Made by a program: the position numbers and the translations under genes. Below the pieces are notes generated by a model that was not told the DNA's origin, searched no databases, and saw only the letters and a program-made list of their open reading frames with translations. A DNA stretch of 64,000 nucleotides. Origin: Trichosphaerium sp. ATCC 40318. Taxonomy: Eukaryota; Protista; Tubulinea. Shown in pieces: positions 1,450-34,016 of the stretch (position 1 is its first letter; each line of letters begins with the position of its first letter). The stretch is from assembly GCA_038496445.1 (NCBI GenBank), contig JALMLS010000009.1, forward strand, positions 206,161 through 270,160. Reading direction: 5' to 3'.

Positions 1450-2790
1450 AAGTCTTACTTAATCAGAGTTCACCGTTTGCCTTGTTGCGTCACTGTGCGA
1501 CTGTCTAGTTTTTGCCACGAGAATATAAGGGTATCAATCTATGACCATTTTTGTGATCGTTTACAATTTACGCAAGTTACCAACGGACCATCAACTTTCG
1601 TAGTTGAGGCAGTGAGTGGCTGAACGTACTTTTAAATACTGAGACGAGGTGGCGCTCCTCAAAGTTGTTATTTTCAACTCCTTACCAGTTACTCAAGCTA
1701 CTACGTTTCGAGGTATGCGCACATACTAACAGCTTGAGAACACAGCTCTCATCTCAGACAAGATGGGCGAACAATGAAAGGAATGGTAGCTGTAAATTGA
1801 ATCTTTTGGTCTTGTGTGGACTTTACTTACATACTCCAGACTTAAAGTTGCCTCAGTAGAATTGGGATCTCAGTGTCATTGTAGGGACAGCATCCAAGAC
1901 AATGAACCCAATGGCACCGAGGTACTAGAAGTTTAGTATAAAATTGAAGAATGAGTGTACCCATTTCAAAGTAGAACCAATAACATACGCATCCATCCTG
2001 GCGTTCCACAAATTTGTCACGCCCCAATTAGGTTTGCTATTTTACCTCTTATAAATGTATAGCTTGAAATGCATCCAAATCTCTTTGAGTGCGACCTACA
2101 TTACACTTTAGCAAAAAAAAGATAAATTTTGTTGATTGATTGTTCATACCTTAAACCCACTTAAAACAATTTTTGAATCCGCGTGAAGCAATTGGATACA
2201 AAATTTGGACAGTATAGAGTAGCAACCTTGTCACTACATTTAAGACAATGCATGCAAGTACAGCATGCCGTATCACAACACGGCAAAAACCACACAGTTT
2301 TAGTTTGAGGTTTGTTTATCGCAAATAGTCCACAAACGTAGTATTGTAAAGATAGGCCACGTCATAAGAGCAAATAAGCATAACAAGAATCCACTATTGT
2401 AGTGACAGAATGGAGTGCAGCAATTACTATGAAAAAAGTGAGAATAGCTAGATAGCTAAAAAACCTGTTATTACCATGTGTTTTGTCGTGCTTGAAGCTT
2501 TGAGATTTCAATATGAGAATAATCTGAGCTTTGGACTAGTATCCAAAGCACACAATTAAACGTATATCATGTATTACAGGTTTTTGTGAGTGCCAAACAG
2601 TTTTTAGCTGAGGACGCCACAAGCAGTTGTTCTGCAATGTAACTGACTTGTGTACTTACCTTGGATACTTTAGACGATGACATTAAACGAGATTCAAAAG
2701 CTGTATCATACAAGAAATAGCGCTAAGGGTTCTATAGCTATCAAAAAAGAAAGCACACAAGAGAAGGTATGTTGGAACACTCTTCCATTT
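1450..2790 (-). pseudogene. Possible degenerate or hypothetical multi-exon gene
   Basis: An ATG near 2788 and several GT..AG intron-like segments flank coding-like hydrophobic stretches, but I could not build one open spliced frame. Confidence 0.25.
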
Positions 2791-3176
2791 TGATTCGAAT
2801 GGTTGGGATAATAGTTCCACAATTGCAAATAAACCTTAAAACAAGTACAATTCAGAGAAACTCTCTAACAATTCAAGCTAATGCAACCGGCAAAACTAAT
2901 ACGAAGCCTTAATTGATCTTGCAAGGAGATACTGTACGTTTTTATTCAGGTAACGTCACTAACGAATCATACATACAAAGCAAATGGATTGTAAGGGTTC
3001 CTGCAATTCTGAAAGTTCTGAGAATTGCAGGAGGTTCTGGAAGATGTCGGTAACTTAAAGATACTTTTTTTTACTGCTCTGGACTAAGACGCACAATGAA
3101 AATGTAGAGGTTCTGGGTGAACTGGTTCCAGAACATTCAGGAACCTGTCTATCTCCAATAAAGGTCTAGTTGTTTC

Positions 3177-5912
3177 TTATACCTTTTTAGAGCTTATCTC
3201 TTGTATACTCTCCTCCCGCATAACATACTTTTTTATCTTTCCAGTAACAGTCTAAAAATAGGTTGTTAGTGCGAGCTACGAAACAAATATCCTTTTCAAC
3301 TGAGGGTCATTTTTGTTTTGTACCATTGGGAACTCTTTAACAAATTTCCAGTATTTTGGGACTTTATAATGTGCTATTTTATCCTTGCAGTATTCTTTAA
3401 TATCTTTTGATGTTATTGATTCATCACGGAGCTTTACCCATGCGCATAACTCTTCACCATACTAAAAACAATAAATTGTTCAAAAACTCTTAAAACAAAA
3501 ATAGCATTTTTTTTTTTTAGGTACGTACTACTTTATCTGGCACACCAACAACCTGAACATCCTCTATACTCGGGTGGGTGTATAAAAATTCTTCAATTTC
3601 TCGCGGGTAAATATTCTCTCCACCACGTATTACCATATCCTTCAAAACAAAGTAAATCGCAAATGAATCAAGAAAAAAAAAGAACAAACCTTGATTCTGC
3701 CTACAATTCGACAGTATCCATCCTTATCTATTGTTGCAAGGTCACCCGTCCGCATCCATCCTAAATTAATTAACGCTGATAATTGATTCTAGCGTGATAC
3801 CATCCGTAATGGCTTCCTTAGATTTCTCTGGGTTGCGCCAGTACCCCTTCATTACCAAATAACCTACACGTTGATTAGCAAATCGTTTTGTAGGTAGAAC
3901 CAAACCTTTTGTCCATAGTTCTCCTGTTGTATCAATAGGTACTGTGCACCCTTCAGCATCAACGACTTTACAAGAAGTGTGATCCAACGCTCTACCGACT
4001 GTCTCTGTTCTTAGTTCAGGAGGGTCCTCACCACTTGTCTAACACTACATAAGCAAAATCCACATCTTTGCCCTTTGTAGCTTTACCTGAAAAGAAACTG
4101 GAGAAGTCTCAGTCATACCATATGCGATTGTAACTTTTGACATGTTCATTTCATTCATGACACGTTTCATAACTTCAACGGGACATGTTGAACCAGCTAC
4201 AAGTGAAACATTGTAAGATATTTGCGCTTGACGGTCACAGGCAAATACGTACCCATTATACCAGTTCTAAGTGTTGATAAATCAAATTCTTTGAATTTGG
4301 GGTGCTCTAGTTCCGATATGAACATAGTAGGGACGCCATGGAGTGCAGTACATTCGTATTTCTGAACAGCCTTTTGTTGAAGTAGTTAGCAGTCGCGAGA
4401 AGACTGTTTGTGTACCTGCAACACAGATAAAGGATCAAAACTTTCTCCTGGATAAATAAGACTTGATCCGTGAGTCATGGCTGCTAAGTTGCCTACACGA
4501 TTGTCAGTTTGAAAGAAAGAAATGAGATAGAAAGCAAAATCACGTGGGGCGTTCCTAGTACTAATCCAAAGCAGTGGTATAGAGGTACAGGTACACAAAG
4601 ACGATCTTTTTCAGTGAGTTCCATCATATCGCCAACAAAAAGGCCGTTATTTAAAATATTCCGATGAGACAGTGTTGCACCCTTCGGCGATCCAGTAGTA
4701 CCTTTTGCAAGCAAGTTATTATTTTTGACATTGTTATTTTTTTTTTTCAATTGGTACCACTTGTGAATTGTATATTCACTGCATCATCACATTTATGACC
4801 AGTACGTATGGATGGGTCATCGGATAGAGCATAGACATCATCAAATTTTAGTAAATCTACCCATCATTAGTGAAAAGACTACATAAACGCGATTGGTCAA
4901 TACCTTTGTAGTTTTCTTTACCAGTGTGAATAATGTATTTCAAAGATGGCACTTCTGTTGATGCTATTTTGTAATTGATAAGAATTTTCTGAGAATTGGT
5001 TTAAAAGTGGTATTACGTAGCGGCATTTCATGCCATACTTCTCTTAGCATCTTGACGTAATTACTTTTTTTAAAGGATGGCGTTATAACAATTGCTAAAA
5101 GAATCATCAGAAAGTACTGAGAAAAAAACCACCAAAGCCTTGGCTTGATGTACCTTTCATCTCGGATAACTGTATAGCATATTTCAGCTCATGTGTTCTA
5201 TATCCTGGATTTATATTAACTAGTATTATTCCAGCTTTAGCAGTAGCAAGATGAGTTACAACCTAAAAGTGACATCAATCAATTTCACAAAAAAAATCAA
5301 AAAAAAGCCGTAGAAAAACAACGAAAACGTACCCACTCTGAGTTGTTCGGCATCCATACGCCTAAGCGATCTCCTTTTTTAATGCCAAGCTTGGCTAAAC
5401 CAGCAGCGAACAGATTTGCGCGTTCCTAACGGAAATGTCAGTTTTACGTGACACTTTACCGTCGTACCTGTAGTTCTTTCCATGACCATGCTACGTCTTG
5501 GTGTAAAACACGCAACACTTCTTTTTGACCGTATTTGTCAACCTAAACAGTACAACCGCGTTAACAGTGTTATGCTGAAGCGACAAGGCGTGCCTGTTCG
5601 TCAAAAAACTCTCCTAGTGTTTGATTGAGTAGAACTCGGCGATTTTGTGGTCCTTGTACATGACTGATTGGGTAGTCCCGTTTGAGAGATGTTTTTACGA
5701 TGAACGGCCGTTTTTCTGTGTTAGGCACTACAACACCAGATTCAGTATTAATTTTACCCTCATTATGTAAGTAATCTAATGGCCATAAGTGAATAGTAGC
5801 AAGAAAGTTAGTACGTGCGAGTATATTGTGTATATCTCCTTTGTGGTTGCGCTTGTACAATGTGACGCTTGGCTACGCGTTTAACACAAGTTTGTAGTGT
5901 AGCTAAGGCCAT
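3177..5912 (-). CDS. AMP-binding acyl-CoA synthetase (ACSF2-like), multi-exon, N-terminus resembles a mitochondrial transit peptide
   Basis: [88 protein letters not shown] motifs. Confidence 0.92.
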
Positions 5913-6409
5913 AGTACAGAGTATACAAAACTAGTGACGTTTCAACCGTTATTTAAAGTTATATTTGGCTTTTCTGTTACTGTAATGACAATAAGAGTTT
6001 TTCTAAGTCTTTGTTGTACAAAAACCTGAACTGGCGTCGGCTGTTTCACTGAATAAATATTTCGTAGCGCTGACAGGTTTCACCACCCAATGTGTAGTAG
6101 CGAAGTGTAATGTGTTTGTAACATTGACTGTCTTCACAGATCGCAACCAGGCGAATTACGAAGTTATCTTAGTTCATTGTATGTTGCTGCGCACGTGATA
6201 ATTGTTATCAGAGCACACGTGCGCTTGCTTCGCGTAGTAAGCGGTCTAAAATTAAAACCAGCGCAAGTAATTTATACCACATAATTTCCGAAGCACGGGT
6301 TACGTTTTTTTATATGTACAAGTAGGTTGTGAGTAATTACAAGTCTGTTTCGTTTCGCTATTTACAAAAAAAGTTAGGATTTGGTAACTTTTTTTTTTCT
6401 ATTCCTTCA

Positions 6410-22453: not shown

Positions 22454-25400
22454 TTATCTCCTGTTAAATTTAAACCAATTAATATTAAAACGAGATGAAA
22501 GCATTTGCAGTTTCACTTGATGTTTTCCTCCAGATATGTTTCCGTTAAGGTTAACAGTAGCTGTAGAATATGTATGCCATCCTCCAGTACCTGGGAAGCT
22601 TATAGTTCCCTTGTCAACGTTGTCTATTAATATCTTGACGGAGAATTGTTCTTTCATCAATGAAGCATGTCGAATAGTGAACGAGTAAGATCCTGACTGG
22701 AAGTTTACATTGTCATATGCTAAATACTCTCCAACATCAATCCAACCAACATTACAACCTCCTCCGTTATCTGTGGTTCTTTGCATATCCACTTGGGCTT
22801 TCCCTGCGACAACTTTACCGCCACAAGCTTGGCCTATTACAAAGTTAGTAACTTATTTTTTGGAAAAGAGAAAAAGCCAAAGGAAGAAAAGTAAAAAAAG
22901 CAGAATATCGGCGTACCTTCATTTTTTGATGTTGTATCAAAAAAGTCAGTGTATTTCTCGGCTTCAATCCTGTCAGTAGCAGAAAATCCATTGTTGTTGT
23001 TGTTGTTATTGTTGTTGTTGTTGTTATTGTTATTGTTATTGTTGTTGTTGTTGTTGTTATTGTTATTGTTTTGTACTTGCAACTTGGCGAACGGATTTGG
23101 GACTGACACTCCGCATTCGCTACAACTGGAAACAAAGTTCCATACTGGGATTGATTGAGGGTTTGCGTTTCTACTTCTGTCAGCGCAACTAATGCATTTG
23201 TCATGGAATATGGCAGGTACGACTAGAGCAGAGGGTTTTGAAGAGCTAGTGAAACCAGACGGTTGAATCTTTTGAAGGCAAGTTGAAAGGAAGATCGGGT
23301 CATGTGGATCTGCTGTTGTCTCGAAAGGACCGAAGGTACTTGACATTTGACGTGCTTGAACACCATAGCAAATGAGGGCTTTGTCATTATTTCTATGACG
23401 GTTCTTGAGGGTGTTACACTCGTTAGGTAAGAGACTGATGAATCTGTCATATGGTGTGTTAACCTTCGCTGGAGCAATAATGACGCCATCGCAGTTGTTG
23501 TTGTTTCTACAAGCATCTACACATGGCTTTGCACCGGCAACGTTGTTGTTAGATACCAAGTGACATCCTCCAGTAACGCTTCTACGATCAGGGGCAAAGC
23601 AATGATCAACTCTCCTAACAACAAAGTTAGTAAAAAGCAAGAAGAAAGAAAGAAAAGCAATTACGTACCCGAAAGTGACTTGGTTGCTTTCTTGCTCTTG
23701 TGGTGGTTCTGGAACATTATTGCGAGGTTGAGGTACGTTCACTGGCTTGACAAATGTCGTTCCTTTGTTTCCGTATATGCTCGCAACTTGTTGGCTTTTG
23801 TAGTCAACGTGAACACAATCGTAGTATCCATGCCAATGCCATGCAACAATATACCTTCCGAATTTAGATCCTTTAGGTATTGTGAGTTGAGCGACATCGT
23901 TATCGAACGGTCTGTGGCTAGTTATACGATACTTGTATACAGCGAGCATATCAGGGTATTTACTACTTCTATATGCGCGGTATTTGTTGTCCTTGAGGCT
24001 TCTCGTGGTGTATTCATAAAGCTTGTACATTGTTTGTTTTTGACCTTCGAATTTTATAGGTCTTTTGTTGCTGAATGTATCTCGGAGGTACATTGGATCA
24101 CCTGGTTTAATCTCTCTCTTGTATCTAGTTCCGAACGCTTTTCTGTTTAGGATCATACGGAAAAGAGGCGTTCCGTCAACTTCAGAGCCTCCTGGAGCGT
24201 TTCTGAGGTAGTCTTCAAATTCGTTCTTTCCGCGACTTGCAAACTTCCCGAGTGACTCCTCAGCGAGGATAATAAGGTATGAAAAACTATGTTCAGGATG
24301 GCCTACTGACCATTCAACTTCGAATTTCTGATCTGGACCGACTTGAATGTGTGGTGCATTTCCAGCTTTAGGAGGGCAAGGCTTTTTTGTTGACGATCTG
24401 CCTTGGCTAATTGCAGGGGAACCGAGCCAGTTGTGAGCTTGAACTGTGGTGATAACTGTTGAAAGAGCAATCAAAGCAATTAATGTAATTGCGAGGCTTG
24501 GCATAGCTACGGCTCCATTTTTTTTAGTGACAACTAAAGAAACGAAGAGAACTAAAGCAAGGAGAACGAAACTAATGAGGAATAAGATCGAGAAAAAAAA
24601 GAAAGAAAAAAAAAAGAAGAGTGCTAAAAAGGTTTGTACCTTTGTGATTTAGAAGAAGAACCGCTAGGTAGATCTTGTGCAAGAACTTTCTGGTTTTCAG
24701 AGATAACATCGTTTGTAGATAAATCACGTTTTGAACCACCTGAGCAAGCACAAATACGTTTGATCGCCGAATCACGTGCATTACATTCGACACGTCTATT
24801 GCAGTTTGATTGTCTGAAGAAACAGTGCGCTCCTTTTTTAAAGGTACCAAGTGATGAACAACTTGTAAGAACTAAATCTGCGCATATCAAATCGTTTGCA
24901 ATGACCATACTAGTCATGCCGTTTTGTGAACTGATATCTTGGCTCATTCCAGAGTTGCATGTTTTTCCTACGGCTGAGCACGCTTGACTGCATGACTCGC
25001 CGACCTTGGACTCATACCAAGTCTTTGGAACACCAGACCCTTCGTTCAATCTTACGTCACCATTTCGGTTTGGATGATAAAAAGCTCCAGTGTTTGCATC
25101 TCCTTGTTTGATGAGAATTCTGAAGAAAATAGGTCCTGTGCCGGAAGGAGGTGCTTCAAACTTGAAACGTGAAATCAAAGGTTTGATATCTGCAGATGAG
25201 TGGGTTACAGAGCGTGAACACTGGTGTCCTGAGTCGCCCCAAGCTTTCTGGAAGTAAGCTAAACACAAAGTTAGAAAGACTCTGGACACAAGGTTGACTA
25301 GCGTTGAACAAAATAGTGCTTACTTGGAACTTGATCGAGAAGTTTGAACGATCCTACTCGTTTTCCGGTGGAATCTTCGGCGTATAATAGAATACCGCGG

Positions 25401-27165: not shown

Positions 27166-28058
<893 letters not shown>

Positions 28059-28492
28059 TTATTTTTTTAATTGTAGAGTTAATACGCCGGTTTTAAATAT
28101 CCTTCATCGCACTTATAAGTGCAGGTGGACGTATGGTAATAGTCTGCAAACAATATATGGTCGTGCTGAGTCTCAAAGGCCAAAAATAGTACAAAAGCAC
28201 TACAAAACGCTAGTAGAGGTAGATAATCCCTCAGCTCAGAGAAACTAATATTGTAAAGCAGTAACTTGTTTTATTTATTTTCAAATAATGTGCAACGTCT
28301 CAAAACAATGCACATGCTGTTTTCGTACATTTGCACTATTCCACTGTTAAACTTCATCACGAAACCCGTCTTGGCGTTTGGGCTATAGGCTGTAAGCTAG
28401 GCTTCCTTACATTAAGTCAGTAAACGCCCTTCGCCGGCTGTTTTGTGTTTTATCAAATTGTGTCTGACACAATCTATTTTTATTTATTTTGG

Positions 28493-29214
28493 CTACAATC
28501 TAGAACAAGCATAACATTCTGAATATCCTTTAGGGCACACTAAGCGTTGATAGTATCCTGAGGTAAAGCAATCCTTACACAACAGTCCTTGACAACTCTT
28601 AGGCACTGCCTCACCAGCAGTAAATGAAACAGAGTAATGAATCAAGTTTGATTGTGTAAACTCCACATGGCAGTAACAGCAATATCTAAACCCAAAGACA
28701 TTAGTACAATGCCAGTACAAAAAAAAAAAAACAGAAGAAAGAAAGCTCAAAATCTCAACAAGACTAGGAATCAACACAGAATCAAATACAAATATTGCTT
28801 CTTAAGCGCTAGCATTTCAATTGATAAAATCAAAGATAAAGTCTGTTGATACTTCGGTGTTGCAGCAGTTTTTGACTAAGACTTCAAAACCGTTGTCGTA
28901 ATAGTGTACCTGTATATGTAGTAACATCGCCAAGGTGGTAGGCAAAATGCGTATAGTGGTACTTCGTAATCGTACTCACCTGGTTCACTGCTTCCAAACA
29001 GTTTATTGTTGAGGCGCAGATATTCCCTGAAAGTTTTAACGCTCCAATAAACATTATCTTTGTAAATATTGTTAAATAAATGGCTAATACGCCAAAACAC
29101 GTGTGCTAGATCGTATACAGTCAAGTAGGAAGCAATTATTGTCCACAGCTCTGGTGGGAGGTAAAGAGATACATTGGAATCTTTTTTAAATGGTTTTTTA
29201 TCTGTTGGATCCAT
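28493..29214 (-). CDS. F-box protein with Cys-rich (Zn-finger-like) C-terminus, 3 exons
   Basis: LPPELWTIIASYL F-box; CCYC..C..LCKDC..C..CYAC tail. Exon 2 needs one extra A in an A-run. Confidence 0.65.
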
Positions 29215-29463
29215 CTTAGTGGTAGAACGAGGAGATGTAAATCAAAACACAATTTCTTCGAATGTTACAACTTCACAAAAAAAAAATCACGTGTGCACAA
29301 TACTACAAGAGCTCACATAGACTTTCACGTTTTATTGATTCTGGTTTATTCATGTTGGTATACAGCCAATTAACAAGCTGCTTCCCAATAAAACTTACCT
29401 TTATGTTTAAGTGTTGTATTGTCATTTCGTACATAAAGTCCTCGCACTGGCAGAGAACTACCG

Positions 29464-30114
29464 TCACTCTAATATCACGAAACCATGTAGCATACTATGC
29501 CTTAGTATATTTCGTATTGCTTTGTATTTCTTCATTGTAATAGCCCATGCATGTTTATTGTCTACCTCAACTTGATGACTTGTTCTTAAACTCAATGTAC
29601 CGAAATAATTAATCTGAACAAACCAACTCCAACTGTTGTTAAGAACATAACTCCTAACATGTTCATGCAATTTATCAAACATGTCAATTGGATAAACTGA
29701 TGCTGATTTAACTCTTGCTCTTACAATAATGCGTCTACGGATCTGTACTGCAAGAGGTCTTATGTCATGAGAAACTTGTATCATATCATGGCAGAGAAAC
29801 AGTTGGTTTAAAATCTCCCTTGCCACTGTTTCTGAGTTTTTTGTTTTGTCTTCTCCTTTACCTGTTAGACTGTATAACCATATTGCCACCAATAAATCAA
29901 TACGACAACTTGATCTTTTTACTTCATCGCAGTATTTCCAAAAGTTTTTGAATAGTCGCATGTCTAATAATAGTTCTATGTGGAATGGACGCGTCAGTGA
30001 TTTCTCCTGGCATAATAAAGAAAAATTAACGTTAATACATTTAATTTTACTAAGTGTTCGTAGTGGTAACGCTTTAAGTATTATGAGAAGAATTTCATTT
30101 GGCAATAAATCCAT
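29464..30114 (-). CDS. Intronless F-box protein
   Basis: MDLLPNEILLIILKALPLRTLSKIKCINVNFSLLC F-box at the N-terminus; 216-aa uninterrupted ORF. Confidence 0.75.
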   Translation of the reverse strand: MDLLPNEILLIILKALPLRTLSKIKCINVNFSLLCQEKSLTRPFHIELLLDMRLFKNFWKYCDEVKRSSCRIDLLVAIWLYSLTGKGEDKTKNSETVAREILNQLFLCHDMIQVSHDIRPLAVQIRRRIIVRARVKSASVYPIDMFDKLHEHVRSYVLNNSWSWFVQINYFGTLSLRTSHQVEVDNKHAWAITMKKYKAIRNILRHSMLHGFVILE

Positions 30115-30383
30115 ATTGTGGCACGTGTTGTTTCTTAAACTTAATGAGTTATGGTCAATTTAATTACACACTGACATTTTCCCACAGCCCTCTCACATTA
30201 CAACGCATGTTAGGTTGTCTGTGTGGTTGTAATATGTTACGTATAAAAAATATGCGTAACACTTGCATTAAGTGCCTTTCAAACTATTGCAAAGGCGTTG
30301 AAAGAAGTTGTGTTCAACACGTTCAAAAATATGTAAAAAACAATACTGATTTGCTTACCTTTCCAGCCATTTTAAAAACCTTC

Positions 30384-30388
30384 AAAAA
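30384..30388 (-). terminator. Putative Pol III terminator (T5) of the permuted tRNA transcript
   Basis: TTTTT at the end of the 3' arm of the flanking inverted repeat; a second T5 lies at 30374-30378. Confidence 0.55.
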
Positions 30389-30412
30389 GACCCAACCCTT
30401 GCGGGATAATAT

Positions 30413-30488
30413 ATGTGCTACCACTACACCATGGGGGAAGTAAGTCCCCCAGTGGGATTCGAACCCACGCCGTAAACTCCGAATGTTT
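30413..30488 (-). tRNA. Circularly permuted tRNA gene, probable tRNA-Arg(TCG)
   Basis: 3' half (30488-30444) AAAC-ATTCGGA-GTTTA-CGGC-GTGGG-TTCGAAT-CCCAC-TGGGGGA-C, spacer TTACT, then 5' half (30438-30413) TCCCCCA-TG-GTGT-AGTGGTA-GCAC-A-T. All four stems pair, with U8/A14, G15/C48, G18G19, U33 and TTCGA present. Confidence 0.85.
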
Positions 30489-30536
30489 GAATTAATGAAG
30501 TACTATTGGGTCTGACTTTAACATCACAAAAACAAG

Positions 30537-30544
30537 TATTTATA
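30537..30544 (-). promoter_or_regulatory. TATA box upstream of the permuted tRNA precursor
   Basis: TATAAATA starts 31 nt upstream of the first paired flank base (30513). Confidence 0.55.
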
Positions 30545-31060
30545 CATCGCAGTTGAACAATAAAAAAACTTGTGGTTTTACAAACATGCACAGAGTGCAA
30601 AATGGCCAATAGTAAACCGCTACATGATTTTTTAATCTATTGTACAGTTTCAGAGAAATACCGAAAAATTGATGTTAACTTTACTATTAGCTTGTTATCA
30701 CATCCGTAGTACCCCAACATAAACTTTGTTGAAGCTACTATGGATCAGTTTTATTTTCCTTAATCTGCACACTCAACAAAGCGTATCTTTGTAGTTAATA
30801 AAGAAAGAAACGCACGTGACTAGTGAACTTTATTTATTTCTTTGTATTTCTCGATGGACATGTGATTTTTACTATAGCAGGTTGCCTTCACACCAGAACA
30901 ATATCAGTACTGATATCTACCTTTCCAATATGTTGTTTCTTGGGCAGTCTGATGGACTGAACAGCAAACGACAAGTAATAAAAAGTCTGGTCTAGTCAAA
31001 AAGTAAAAAATGATACAATTAATAATAGCGGTGACACTGATAGTATCAGCTAACGCAATA

Positions 31061-31839
31061 ATGAGTAAATTTGGTGATGACGTTGAAACAGAATCCGTTT
31101 GGGACTACCCAAGGTAAATACGCAAACAAATGCGCTTATACGCTTTAAAATCGCTTTGGTACTATTTTTAATGCGTTTTAGACCTCCTGCTTTAATTCCA
31201 ACAAGTAAACGCGTCAGAATCATTTTTAATGGCGTAGTCATAGCAGACACAACGAAAGCTCTAAGGTAGGAGAAACAAATCGCCGAAACGATTTTTCGTT
31301 AACTGCCAAACTTAGAATATTGGAGACAAGCCACCCACCTACATACTATATACCTCCTGAAGACATCAAGAAGGAACATTTCATTCCTGTCGGCCGTACA
31401 ACATATTGCGAGTGGAAGGTTGATATTACTATTTTGTTGTTCTTTGAACTCTCTTTAACGTTGTTTTAATAGGGTACAGCTAGTTACTACAATATCAAGG
31501 TTGGCGACAAGGTATCTGAACGATCTGGCTGGTACTACAAGGTATTAAATAAGATAATGACATCCTCAATTGAGTTTGGTTAATTTTTCTTCTCTAGAGC
31601 CCTGTATCTGCTTATAAGGAGTTGAAAGACCATGTCGCTGTTTACGCAAGTCGTATGGACGAATGTTATGTTGGTGACGAGAAAGTTCAGTCTCAGGAAG
31701 GTGACTTTTATGGTGGATGGATTACTTCGGTAATTTCTTTTTTTTCTGTTTTTTGACTTTGGCTTATTATTTTTTAATGTAGAACATAAACGGAGGTAAA
31801 AAAGGTTTCAAAGGTGGAGCAGGGACATGGGGATGGTAG
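31061..31839 (+). CDS. DUF427 family protein, multi-exon
   Basis: ESVWDYPRPP, ETSHPPTYYIPPED, TYCEWKGTASYY, GDFYGGWITS, FKGGAGTWGW*. Confidence 0.9.
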
Positions 31840-31984
31840 AATAAAATTATTAGTTTGTGACTATTAAAAGAAAGAGAAGAAATTACTCAAGTTGGAATGT
31901 GTAAAATGGTTTTATTTACTAAATTTACAATCGACGTTAGATCGATACTGGGATCTTTGTGAAATCAATGAGATTTATGTTGTC

Positions 31985-32523
31985 ATAGATGTAGAAGCGC
32001 TGCTTCTTCCTCAAAAGTAAGAGCTCTTGTAGATCTTTTTGTATGAGAATGTCTTATTATATTTTGCGTTTCTATGTTTTTCTGGTCGAAAGATACTGTT
32101 CTTGCGTTTTTGTAAAATCGTTTTTTTGCAACTCTAGACGGAGCTTTCATATTCATGTTGTTTGTTGCACCATTCTTTTGAACGACCTAATATACTTTGT
32201 AAGCTTCTTTCCAAGTTTATTTCTGATGAAGAAAAAAAACAACAGTGACTACGCGCAATAGGCGCGTAGACAAACTTGCTTGCGTAAAGCGCTCAACTTG
32301 AAAAAAAAAACGGTTGATTGAAATAGTTATGTACCTGGTTGTGTGATTGACAGTTTGTTTTGGGTTTTTCTACAACATCGATATATAGAGGCCTTCTTTG
32401 ATTCATCCTTTTGAGCACATTTGTAACAAGAAGGTTTGTTGATGCAACGAGAGGACTTGATTGCTTTTCTTGCATTCTAGTGTTGAATTGGCTTCTAGGA
32501 TATTGTACGGTGTTTTGCATCAT
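31985..32523 (-). CDS. Hypothetical basic, low-complexity protein, about 3 exons
   Basis: ATG at 32523 and GT-AG introns; 3' frame ambiguous; no recognised domain. Confidence 0.4.
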
Positions 32524-32800
32524 GTTGTATAAAGGTAGAAGTGTTGTAGTTCGTGTATAATAATGAAAAAAATGAATGAAAAACTGTGATTGATATTTAG
32601 GTTGGTTCAACAAACGGAAAGAAAAATCAATCTACAAATATCAATCTACAAAAATCACTCAAAATTTTCTTCAATCAGTTTTCTAAAGAACGAAACCAAT
32701 CTTGTAGAATCATTAAGCTATCAATCTATTTATAAGCATACTAGAACACTCAAATCAATACATGTATTGGGCTTTATTGAGGTTTTATTTGATGAACAGT

Positions 32801-34016
32801 TTAAAGTTTTACAGTGTTTTTGTGGTATGGATAAAACTCGTTGAATTCTCGGAACCTTACAAAGGATAATGCAGGAAGCATTAGGTTTTTTATGAACCAT
32901 GGTAAGTTGCTGAACATTAGAGCACGTTCTTCCTCAGTTTGAGAGTAATACATCATAGGAAATTGAGTTCCTACTTTATCTTGTTGCTTCACGTATGTCA
33001 TGATTTCTTTAATGACATCATCTTCTTCTTCAACTGGTAAGTACTTTACAACCAACTCATGGGTTATAAGAGATGTTTCAGTAGCGACGTGGGCCTATGA
33101 GACGAGTGTTAACGAAAACCAAGGAAGTTGTAGATTAAAGCAAACAAAAAAAAACTGTTTGGGTTAACAGTCACGTGCCGTGAAGGCATCTCTAACGCTC
33201 GTAGTTTTCTCTAACAGCTCATCTATACCCTCTTTTCTGTTGCAATCAATCTCAGTTTCGCGTATTTCTTTAATCTTGGCAGCTAAGGCTTCATGTTCGT
33301 CTTTAACAACGCCAGAATCCTAAAACAAACCAATTAACTCGCTTCATAGAACGCACTGCTTCAATTATGATTTAAAGAAAATAAATAACCGATTTACGTC
33401 AACGTGCCTTGTTGAATGATGCTATACGCTTCGATAGTGCTTTGTGAATAAATTTCTCTTCTTGACCGTGATGAGTCTCAATCACGTCGAGAACTGTAAG
33501 TAAGTGTCTATGGAGCGCTAATATTATGTCAAGACGTTATATAAAGTATTGTAGAAGCCTTTACGTACCTCCACGGCGTTTTTGAGGCCATAAATTCGGA
33601 CTTTTCTTTATCTGAGCACAAGCCTTTTGTATCCTTTCAAGATTTCTATCAATTACCTTGTGGGTATTCTCATTACCACTCACAATCCTAGAAACAGTGC
33701 GTTCTCCTATAATTTTTATTTTAGGTCGGTTTTTTTGTGACTCCAAAAAATATCACGTGATAAGCATTTACAAGTACGAGTACGTGTAAAAACTGAGCAG
33801 CGTACCTGTTTTTTCTTGTTTCGGTTCTTCCTCTTGTTTTTGATCTTTCTTTGCCTCTGTCGCTTCTGTAGTTTGTTCTGGCGTTGGAGATACATCTTCT
33901 GGAGTATCTTTTTCTTCTTTTTGTTCCGTCGAAGGCGTTGGTTTCTCTACAGGTGGTTCCTTTATATTTTCGAGTGCAGAAGTATCTACAGTCTCTTGAG
34001 TAGGTGTTTCGGCCAT
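32801..34016 (-). CDS. Hemerythrin-like (HHE) domain protein with acidic disordered N-terminus
   Basis: H(KVIDRNL)...HHGQEE...EH(EAL)...HVATE metal-ligand pattern; E/K/T/P-rich first exon. Confidence 0.75.

Follow-up and report, generated by a model that had tools for sequence, protein, structure and literature searches.

Circularly permuted tRNA genes are so far known only in a few algae such as Cyanidioschyzon merolae, Ostreococcus and Micromonas, in one nucleomorph, that of Bigelowiella natans, and in one archaeon, Thermofilum pendens (PMC3978253). Their junctions fall at tRNA positions 20/21, 37/38, 50/51 or 59/60, their intervening sequences measure 1-74 bp, and all of the described genes are predicted to form a bulge-helix-bulge (BHB) motif between leader and trailer at the junction (PMC3978253). 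The bacterial YrlA RNAs are tRNA-mimicking Y RNAs that carry a Ro60-binding helix with the motif GNCGAAN0-1G and are encoded next to the Ro60 gene (PMC4201824); they have no anticodon loop (10.1101/312249). The 7-bp stem of Mycobacterium smegmatis YrlA is opened by RNase P and CCA is added to it (PMC4201824), and in the two-piece tmRNA opening into two base-paired pieces occurs as well (PMC3978253). Our search of the literature returned no permuted tRNA genes or YrlA-like RNAs described in Amoebozoa, and no eukaryotic counterpart of the tRNA-mimicking YrlA RNAs.

Here we describe a locus of Trichosphaerium that can be compared with both kinds of system. It lies within a 64-kb stretch of DNA, referred to as the window.

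A tRNA body with its halves exchanged

On the minus strand of the window, at 30413-30488, lies a permuted tRNA-like unit in which the back part precedes the front part. The 3' part (30444-30488), corresponding to tRNA positions 28-73, contains the anticodon hairpin AAAC-AUUCGGA-GUUU with the anticodon TCG at 30482-30480, followed by A43, the 4-nt variable loop CGGC and the T arm, and it ends with the 3' strand of the acceptor stem and the discriminator C73. Directly after C73 comes a 5-nt intervening sequence, TTACT (30439-30443), delimited by the sequence and the re-ordering script, and CCA is not encoded; together with C73 these five nucleotides make up a 6-nt loop that closes the acceptor stem. 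The 5' part (30413-30438), corresponding to tRNA positions 1-27, holds the 5' strand of the acceptor stem, U8 and G9, the D arm GUGU-AGUGGUA-GCAC, A26 and U27. Both parts were delimited with the re-ordering script, ARAGORN and RNAfold.

When the two parts are put back into tRNA order, a sequence of 71 nt is obtained that ARAGORN calls as tRNA-Arg(tcg) and whose minimum-energy structure in RNAfold is an exact cloverleaf (-23.8 kcal/mol). The acceptor stem has 7/7 pairs, the D stem 4 bp (one of them G-U) and the anticodon and T stems 5 bp each, and the anticodon-stem pair U27-A43 links the two halves across the break. Nucleotides for the tertiary contacts are present (U8-A14, G15-C48, G18/G19 with U55/C56, U54-A58 and G10-C25-G45), as are the T loop TTCGAAT and U33, G37 and A38. 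The first-pass annotation of this DNA had described permuted halves with a full cloverleaf, a junction at 27/28 (or 28/29) and a 5-nt linker, and had suggested running a tRNA caller on the re-ordered sequence; the coordinates, the stem counts and the position of the anticodon were all reproduced, and the junction and linker are as described. Its remark that A32 and C73 are atypical also holds. In addition to these two nucleotides, the re-ordered body has U1-A72, a 7-nt D loop and a 4-nt variable loop, all of which we take to depart from usual Arg tRNAs, and the body is accordingly atypical for Arg.

In its native order the unit escapes detection. ARAGORN finds no tRNA, canonical ones included, anywhere in the 64-kb window, and the Rfam tRNA model gives no match to the unit, so that standard scanners miss it, just as the earlier annotation had anticipated for a permuted gene. 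As a chance control, the succession of T arm, closed 7/7 acceptor hairpin and D arm was sought in the window and in 100 first-order shuffles of it; the pattern occurs once in the real sequence and in none of the shuffles. The unit is single-copy within the window, and a repeat or SINE was rejected as a candidate on the absence of a second copy there.

Flanking signals and genomic surroundings

In the permuted arrangement the B box (30466-30456) stands upstream of the A box (about 30431-30421), an order that would require an external promoter. A TATA box, TATAAATA, is located at 30544-30537 on the minus strand, 31 nt upstream of a closing stem that brackets the unit; the octamer is rare, occurring just 6 times in the 64-kb window when both strands are counted. 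The 5' strand of the closing stem, AGACCCAA (30506-30513), is at the presumed 5' end of the transcript, and its 3' strand, UUGGGUCU, lies at 30388-30395. The two strands pair perfectly over 8 bp in the free fold, in the constrained fold and in the cofold of leader and trailer alike, and we estimate the chance of finding an 8-nt perfect complement between two 40-nt flanks at about 0.02.

The leader, 28 nt long, includes an AU-rich linker of 17 nt, UAGUACUUCAUUAAUUC (30489-30505), which is unpaired when the four tRNA arms are enforced. The trailer, 27 nt long, begins with the 7-nt linker AUAUUAU (30406-30412), unpaired in the constrained fold, and continues with a small hairpin, CCC-GCAA-GGG (30396-30405), which has a GNRA-type loop, appears in every fold and adjoins the 3' strand of the closing stem. 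A T5 run resembling a Pol III-type terminator (30384-30388) overlaps the last base of the closing stem. Both the closing stem and the small hairpin still form with the four tRNA arms enforced, and the predicted transcript of ~130 nt folds at -45 kcal/mol (z = -3.1 against shuffles). The TATA box, the 8-bp closing stem and the T5 run are flank features absent from the first-pass annotation and, as far as the sequence can tell, make the unit look like a gene.

Further upstream, ~62 nt from the presumed start, the minus-strand sequence ACCACAAG (30569-30576) weakly matches, with one mismatch, the dictyostelid upstream element DUSE, [AT]CCCA[AT]AA, which is positioned ~63 bp upstream of ncRNA genes (PMC3188802) and of which variants with two Cs are known (PMC7919456). 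Given the mismatch and the fact that it was spotted after the fact, this match is a lead only; the loose DUSE pattern occurs once per ~1.3 kb of strand in the window. Readings of the flanks as a ribozyme or as C/D-box or H/ACA RNAs were rejected, as the folds show none of these and the Rfam snoRNA matches are at noise level only.

The unit is intergenic. The window has ~38% GC and introns of 48-84 nt, and the Trichosphaerium draft genome is reported with 37.7% GC and a mean intron of 75 bp in an article whose main text makes no mention of tRNAs (PMC10521059). Contigs from four RNA runs, which are mRNA-like libraries, cover 31035-31952 and 32767-33321 and none lies over 30061-30848; the query of this search (27500-33400, 5.9 kb) was of a length at which a 130-nt RNA falls below the word threshold.

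Several neighbouring genes and reading frames were recorded along the way. The plus-strand gene at 31035-31952, represented at high depth by spliced contigs from two RNA runs, encodes a signal-peptide protein that is DUF427-like as judged from its translation and has five GT-AG introns of 50-68 nt. In the minus-strand gene at 32767-33321 the intron at 33093-33178 was reported as GC..GT on the plus strand and corresponds, within a 3-nt ambiguity, to a GC-AG intron on the minus strand (33178-33095). An open reading frame ~270 nt downstream of the unit and on the same strand is possibly F-box-like and has no Pfam match. There is likewise no Pfam match for the 555-aa minus-strand reading frame at 22837-24504, which contains ~30 asparagines in a row, a kind of tract that amoebozoan proteins often have. 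A MORN-repeat reading frame in the window matches distant bacterial repeat proteins only, and exact look-ups of three reading frames of the window returned no record.

Comparison with permuted tRNA genes, YrlA and phage units

With the described permuted tRNA genes the unit shares a 3' part that precedes the 5' part on a single strand and the cloverleaf that results from re-ordering, a short intervening sequence that closes the acceptor end (the 5 nt of TTACT are within the 1-74 range) and an unencoded CCA, as well as a TATA-like box upstream and a T run downstream (TATAAATA at 30544-30537 and T5 at 30388-30384). It differs from them in its junction at 27/28 within the anticodon stem and the absence of a BHB, in having a leader of 28 nt and a trailer of 27 nt that contribute an 8-bp terminal stem and a GNRA hairpin, and in its host, an amoeba-like heterotroph.

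The absence of the BHB was established for both possible junctions, 27/28 and 28/29, with a constrained fold and a hand check of a 4-bp helix flanked by 3-nt bulges. Only 1/4 pairs of the central helix can be made, and pairing by hand between the leader and trailer linkers yields at most a weak A-U helix of 4 bp. With no BHB at the junction, the route to a true tRNA would have to differ from the algal and archaeal one, and trimming back to the junction, which is located within a helix, would result in a nicked RNA duplex. The first-pass claim of a tRNA gene matured via circularisation finds no support in these comparisons: no BHB can be drawn, and the layout fits a YrlA-like mimic and the phage units described below equally well. 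The accompanying suggestion of a new lineage with permuted tRNAs may hold, since our literature search found none reported for Amoebozoa.

When the locus was compared with Rfam, YrlA (RF02553) was the only family matched at E<1. The match, at 30493-30386, spans the whole model and scores 27.4 bits (E=0.0015) against a gathering score of 69 for the family, and the search gave no gathering-level match. The alignment is best over the T arm, the closed acceptor hairpin and the D arm, and it is in these arms that the likeness resides: in both, paired 5' and 3' ends enclose a T arm, a closed acceptor-like hairpin and a D arm in that order, and the unit keeps the nucleotides of the tRNA tertiary pairs and has a closed acceptor stem of 7 bp, as in M. 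smegmatis YrlA. In contrast to YrlA it is eukaryotic and has a TATA box, a T5 run and a complete anticodon hairpin. A reading of the sequence also finds no GNCGAAN0-1G motif in the unit, where the only CGAA is that of the T loop and follows UU. The absent Ro60 motif and the anticodon hairpin together indicate a likeness in layout and not membership of the YrlA family. The two-piece tmRNA (RF04321; PMC3978253) is similar to the unit in that its gene is permuted, its tRNA-like acceptor end is opened and it works as two unligated pieces, and different in its tag reading frame, its pseudoknots and its bacterial origin; by analogy it is a precedent for a two-piece outcome only and not a relative.

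A parallel in arm order comes from viral contigs. When these were searched for a B box with an A box a short distance behind it, >116 loci were returned, among which 19 distinct units have a closed 7/7 acceptor hairpin. In many of the 19 a long terminal stem is present too, together with a 4-nt variable loop and a 5-bp hairpin whose 7-nt loop is anticodon-like. Units located in tRNA clusters of IMG/VR contigs include L111:1918-2045 (+), L091:4753-4880 (-), L007:6233-6360 (-), L014:3339-3466 (-), L019:1277-1404 (-), L082:9712-9839 (-), L002:153-280 (+) and L022:2686-2813 (-), and tandem pairs occur in contigs L112, L029, L044 and L022. From 5' to 3' the order in the phage units is a terminal stem, a conserved YCAGCAA, an anticodon-like hairpin TCTTT-CTG[T/C/A]AAA-AAAGA, a 4-nt variable loop, the T arm, a 7-bp acceptor hairpin with the conserved loop T-TGGTCA, and the D arm. 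Close relatives vary at the middle base of the anticodon (CTGTAAA, CTGCAAA and CTGAAAA), which argues against decoding and for mimicry. The phage units are unnamed in Rfam, at gathering level, and in GenBank; similar stretches are present in Synechococcus phage BUCT-ZZ01 and Ralstonia phage RsoM2USA, where they are unannotated.

The unit of the window can be aligned with these phage units arm by arm, from the terminal stem through to the D arm GTGT-AGTGGTA-GCAC, including the 7-bp closed acceptor hairpin. The phage units differ in their break, which is at 26/27 and not at 27/28, in the conserved CAGCAA after the 5' strand of the stem and the conserved acceptor loop TTGGTCA, in a short 3' linker and in the variation of the middle anticodon base among close relatives. 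Bacteria have no reported splicing endonuclease (10.1101/312249), and the exact layout of the window unit is thus found where a splicing-endonuclease route is unreported. The likeness between the phage units and the window unit may be convergent, part of it being forced by the search pattern. Patterns specific to the window unit gave 0 matches throughout, whether for its exact T arm with closed acceptor hairpin in metagenome contigs, for a contiguous version of its D-arm/anticodon-loop junction in metagenome contigs, or for its T arm with the 3' strand of the acceptor stem in viral contigs.

Some further observations concern the phage units only. Just 3' of the L111 unit, at 2227-6069 of that contig, are genes for a dual-specificity phosphatase, a metallophosphoesterase, an HD-domain protein, an RNA ligase of the T4 Rnl1 type and a 2OG-Fe(II) oxygenase. 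This region looks like an RNA-repair cassette, and it can be speculated from it that the L111 unit might serve to bait anticodon nucleases or act as their decoy. No Ro60-sized reading frame lies beside the L111 or L007 units. The stretch L111:1919-2035 weakly matches the Rfam family Dicty_Class_I_RNA (19.1 bits, E=0.32), probably by chance; the match stems from the short terminal stem and from CAGCAA, the core of the 11-nt motif of dictyostelid Class I RNAs. A link to these RNAs was rejected, as it consists of the weak match of a phage unit and the window unit has no such match.

A possible lasting tRNA look-alike or tRNA in the making

Given these results, the explanation that we favour, with a probability of roughly 0.4, is that the locus would be a small-RNA gene of Pol III type, self-contained and with an external promoter, whose product is a lasting, unligated tRNA look-alike of YrlA-like layout; this figure is for the RNA as made and for an opened two-piece form of it jointly. 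The putative transcript, of ~125-130 nt, would run from about 30516 to 30386 on the minus strand and fold into a complete tRNA-shaped body with shuffled strand connectivity. Its acceptor stem would be shut by the 6-nt loop, its chain would be open atop the anticodon stem (27/28), and the two free ends would pass via the unpaired linkers into the 8-bp terminal stem with its U tail.

Three outcomes can be envisaged for such an RNA. If kept as made, its ends would be protected by the terminal stem and the U tail, and the look-alike may be recognised by tRNA-binding proteins while staying uncharged for as long as the acceptor stem is closed. Alternatively, the acceptor loop could be opened by RNase P and by trimming of the 3' end along with the addition of CCA, which would produce two base-paired pieces; a cofold of the two pieces in untrimmed form gives -46 kcal/mol. 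Finally, the leader and trailer could be removed and U27 joined to A28, which would produce a normal tRNA. To judge by its sequence, the unit is compatible with all three outcomes. What we observe at the locus is its anatomy, the predicted folds, the promoter- and terminator-like signals and the lack of a BHB; its transcription and the stability, protein partners and function of its product are inferred.

Several features favour the unligated look-alike. With a TATA box at about -31 on one side and the T5 run on the other, the terminal stem is positioned exactly so that it would pair the ends of the transcript, and the GNRA hairpin would stack on it, which supports the reading as a stable RNA. 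Paired ends of this build are found in stable Pol III RNAs such as Y RNAs. For bringing the two sides of the junction together the terminal stem is not needed, since the tRNA body already joins them. The missing BHB at 27/28 or 28/29, YrlA as the only Rfam family below E=1, the phage units with the same arm order and a body atypical for Arg all point in the same direction. There are however features that argue against the look-alike. The anticodon arm is fully canonical (7-nt loop, U33, G37 and A38), none of which a mimic of shape would need, the U27-A43 pair is formed across the break, and the 7-bp acceptor stem with its discriminator and unencoded CCA makes a good substrate for RNase P and tRNase Z. 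Against the YrlA-like character in particular stand the absent Ro60-binding motif and an Rfam score far under gathering.

Some of the features that trouble the look-alike are among those on which a true circularly permuted tRNA-Arg(UCG) gene can be argued, a serious contender that we nevertheless put at distinctly less than even odds. Here the ends would be removed, U27 joined to A28, the loop opened by RNase P and tRNase Z, and CCA added to give a tRNA of 74 nt. The cloverleaf is complete, with all tertiary-pair nucleotides, an anticodon loop of canonical Arg type and the U27-A43 pair across the break, and the acceptor end would be an ideal RNase P/Z substrate. The 5-nt intervening sequence, the unencoded CCA, the upstream TATA box and the downstream T run fit the described permuted genes, and introns at 27/28 are known from tRNAs of Ostreococcus lucimarinus (PMC3978253). 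A junction at this position has no known enzyme path without a BHB, but because it is internal to a helix, trimming leaves a duplex nick that a nick-sealing ligase could close; one possible BHB-free route would accordingly trim the RNA to the helix and seal the nick in the anticodon stem by a duplex-nick ligase that joins 3'-OH and 5'-phosphate. Other points tell against a tRNA gene: A32 and C73 are atypical, the closing stem with its GNRA hairpin is elaborate and, for a short-lived precursor, unnecessary, the phage units of the same layout set a precedent, and the metagenome contigs gave 0 matches to a contiguous gene that combines this D arm with this anticodon loop. The broader proposition, that an amoebozoan may encode part of its working tRNA set as permuted genes broken in or atop the anticodon stem and matured without a BHB, seems to us unlikely, though not so unlikely as to be passed over; in such a case the unpaired ends may, for example, be trimmed to the helix and the duplex nick sealed by an RNA ligase of the Rnl2 type.

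It is improbable that the unit is a neutral or decaying by-product, be it the middle of a tandem duplication or the copy of a mobile element, either silent or transcribed to no function. In its favour, the accepted model derives permuted tRNA genes from tandem duplication, and tRNAs in tandem can be as little as 2-3 nt from each other, for instance in the giant-virus contig L003; the window also contains just one copy of the unit, whose body and anticodon are poorly matched. A remnant of this kind is contradicted by the state of the locus, in which both halves are intact with zero mismatches in any stem, and in which the outer flanks retain no residual similarity to the missing halves: comparison of leader and trailer with the missing tRNA halves gave no significant similarity (shuffle fractions 0.17-1.0). 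The rare TATAAATA, the 8-bp closing stem and the T5 run are moreover placed exactly around the unit, which, together with the intact stems and the lack of flank remnants, argues against a decaying tandem-duplication remnant.

We give very little credence to a true Y RNA or YrlA member, a Ro60-bound adaptor acquired from bacteria, phages or giant viruses or else ancestral, since the sole Rfam family match, the ends paired and U-tailed as in Y RNAs and a Trichosphaerium genome reported to hold many genes of giant-virus origin (PMC10521059) are set against 27.4 bits where 69 is the gathering score, a Ro60 motif (PMC4201824) that is absent with the sole CGAA in the T loop, an anticodon loop that YrlA does not have, and no exact relative in the viral contigs searched.

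Under the preferred reading as under that of a tRNA gene the locus would be new, either as a permuted tRNA gene with a helix-internal, BHB-less junction or as a eukaryotic tRNA mimic of permuted layout, and in either outcome standard tRNA scanners and Rfam miss such units. If the unit becomes a real tRNA, permuted tRNA genes would be extended to Amoebozoa and an as yet undescribed processing route would be required; BHB-free maturation, if true, would be a third and mechanistically new route from disrupted genes to tRNAs, and the permuted tRNAs made by it the first in a heterotrophic eukaryote. If the unit stays permuted, as in the look-alike that we favour, it would be a eukaryotic counterpart of the bacterial and phage YrlA RNAs, linked to widespread, unannotated RNAs of phages.
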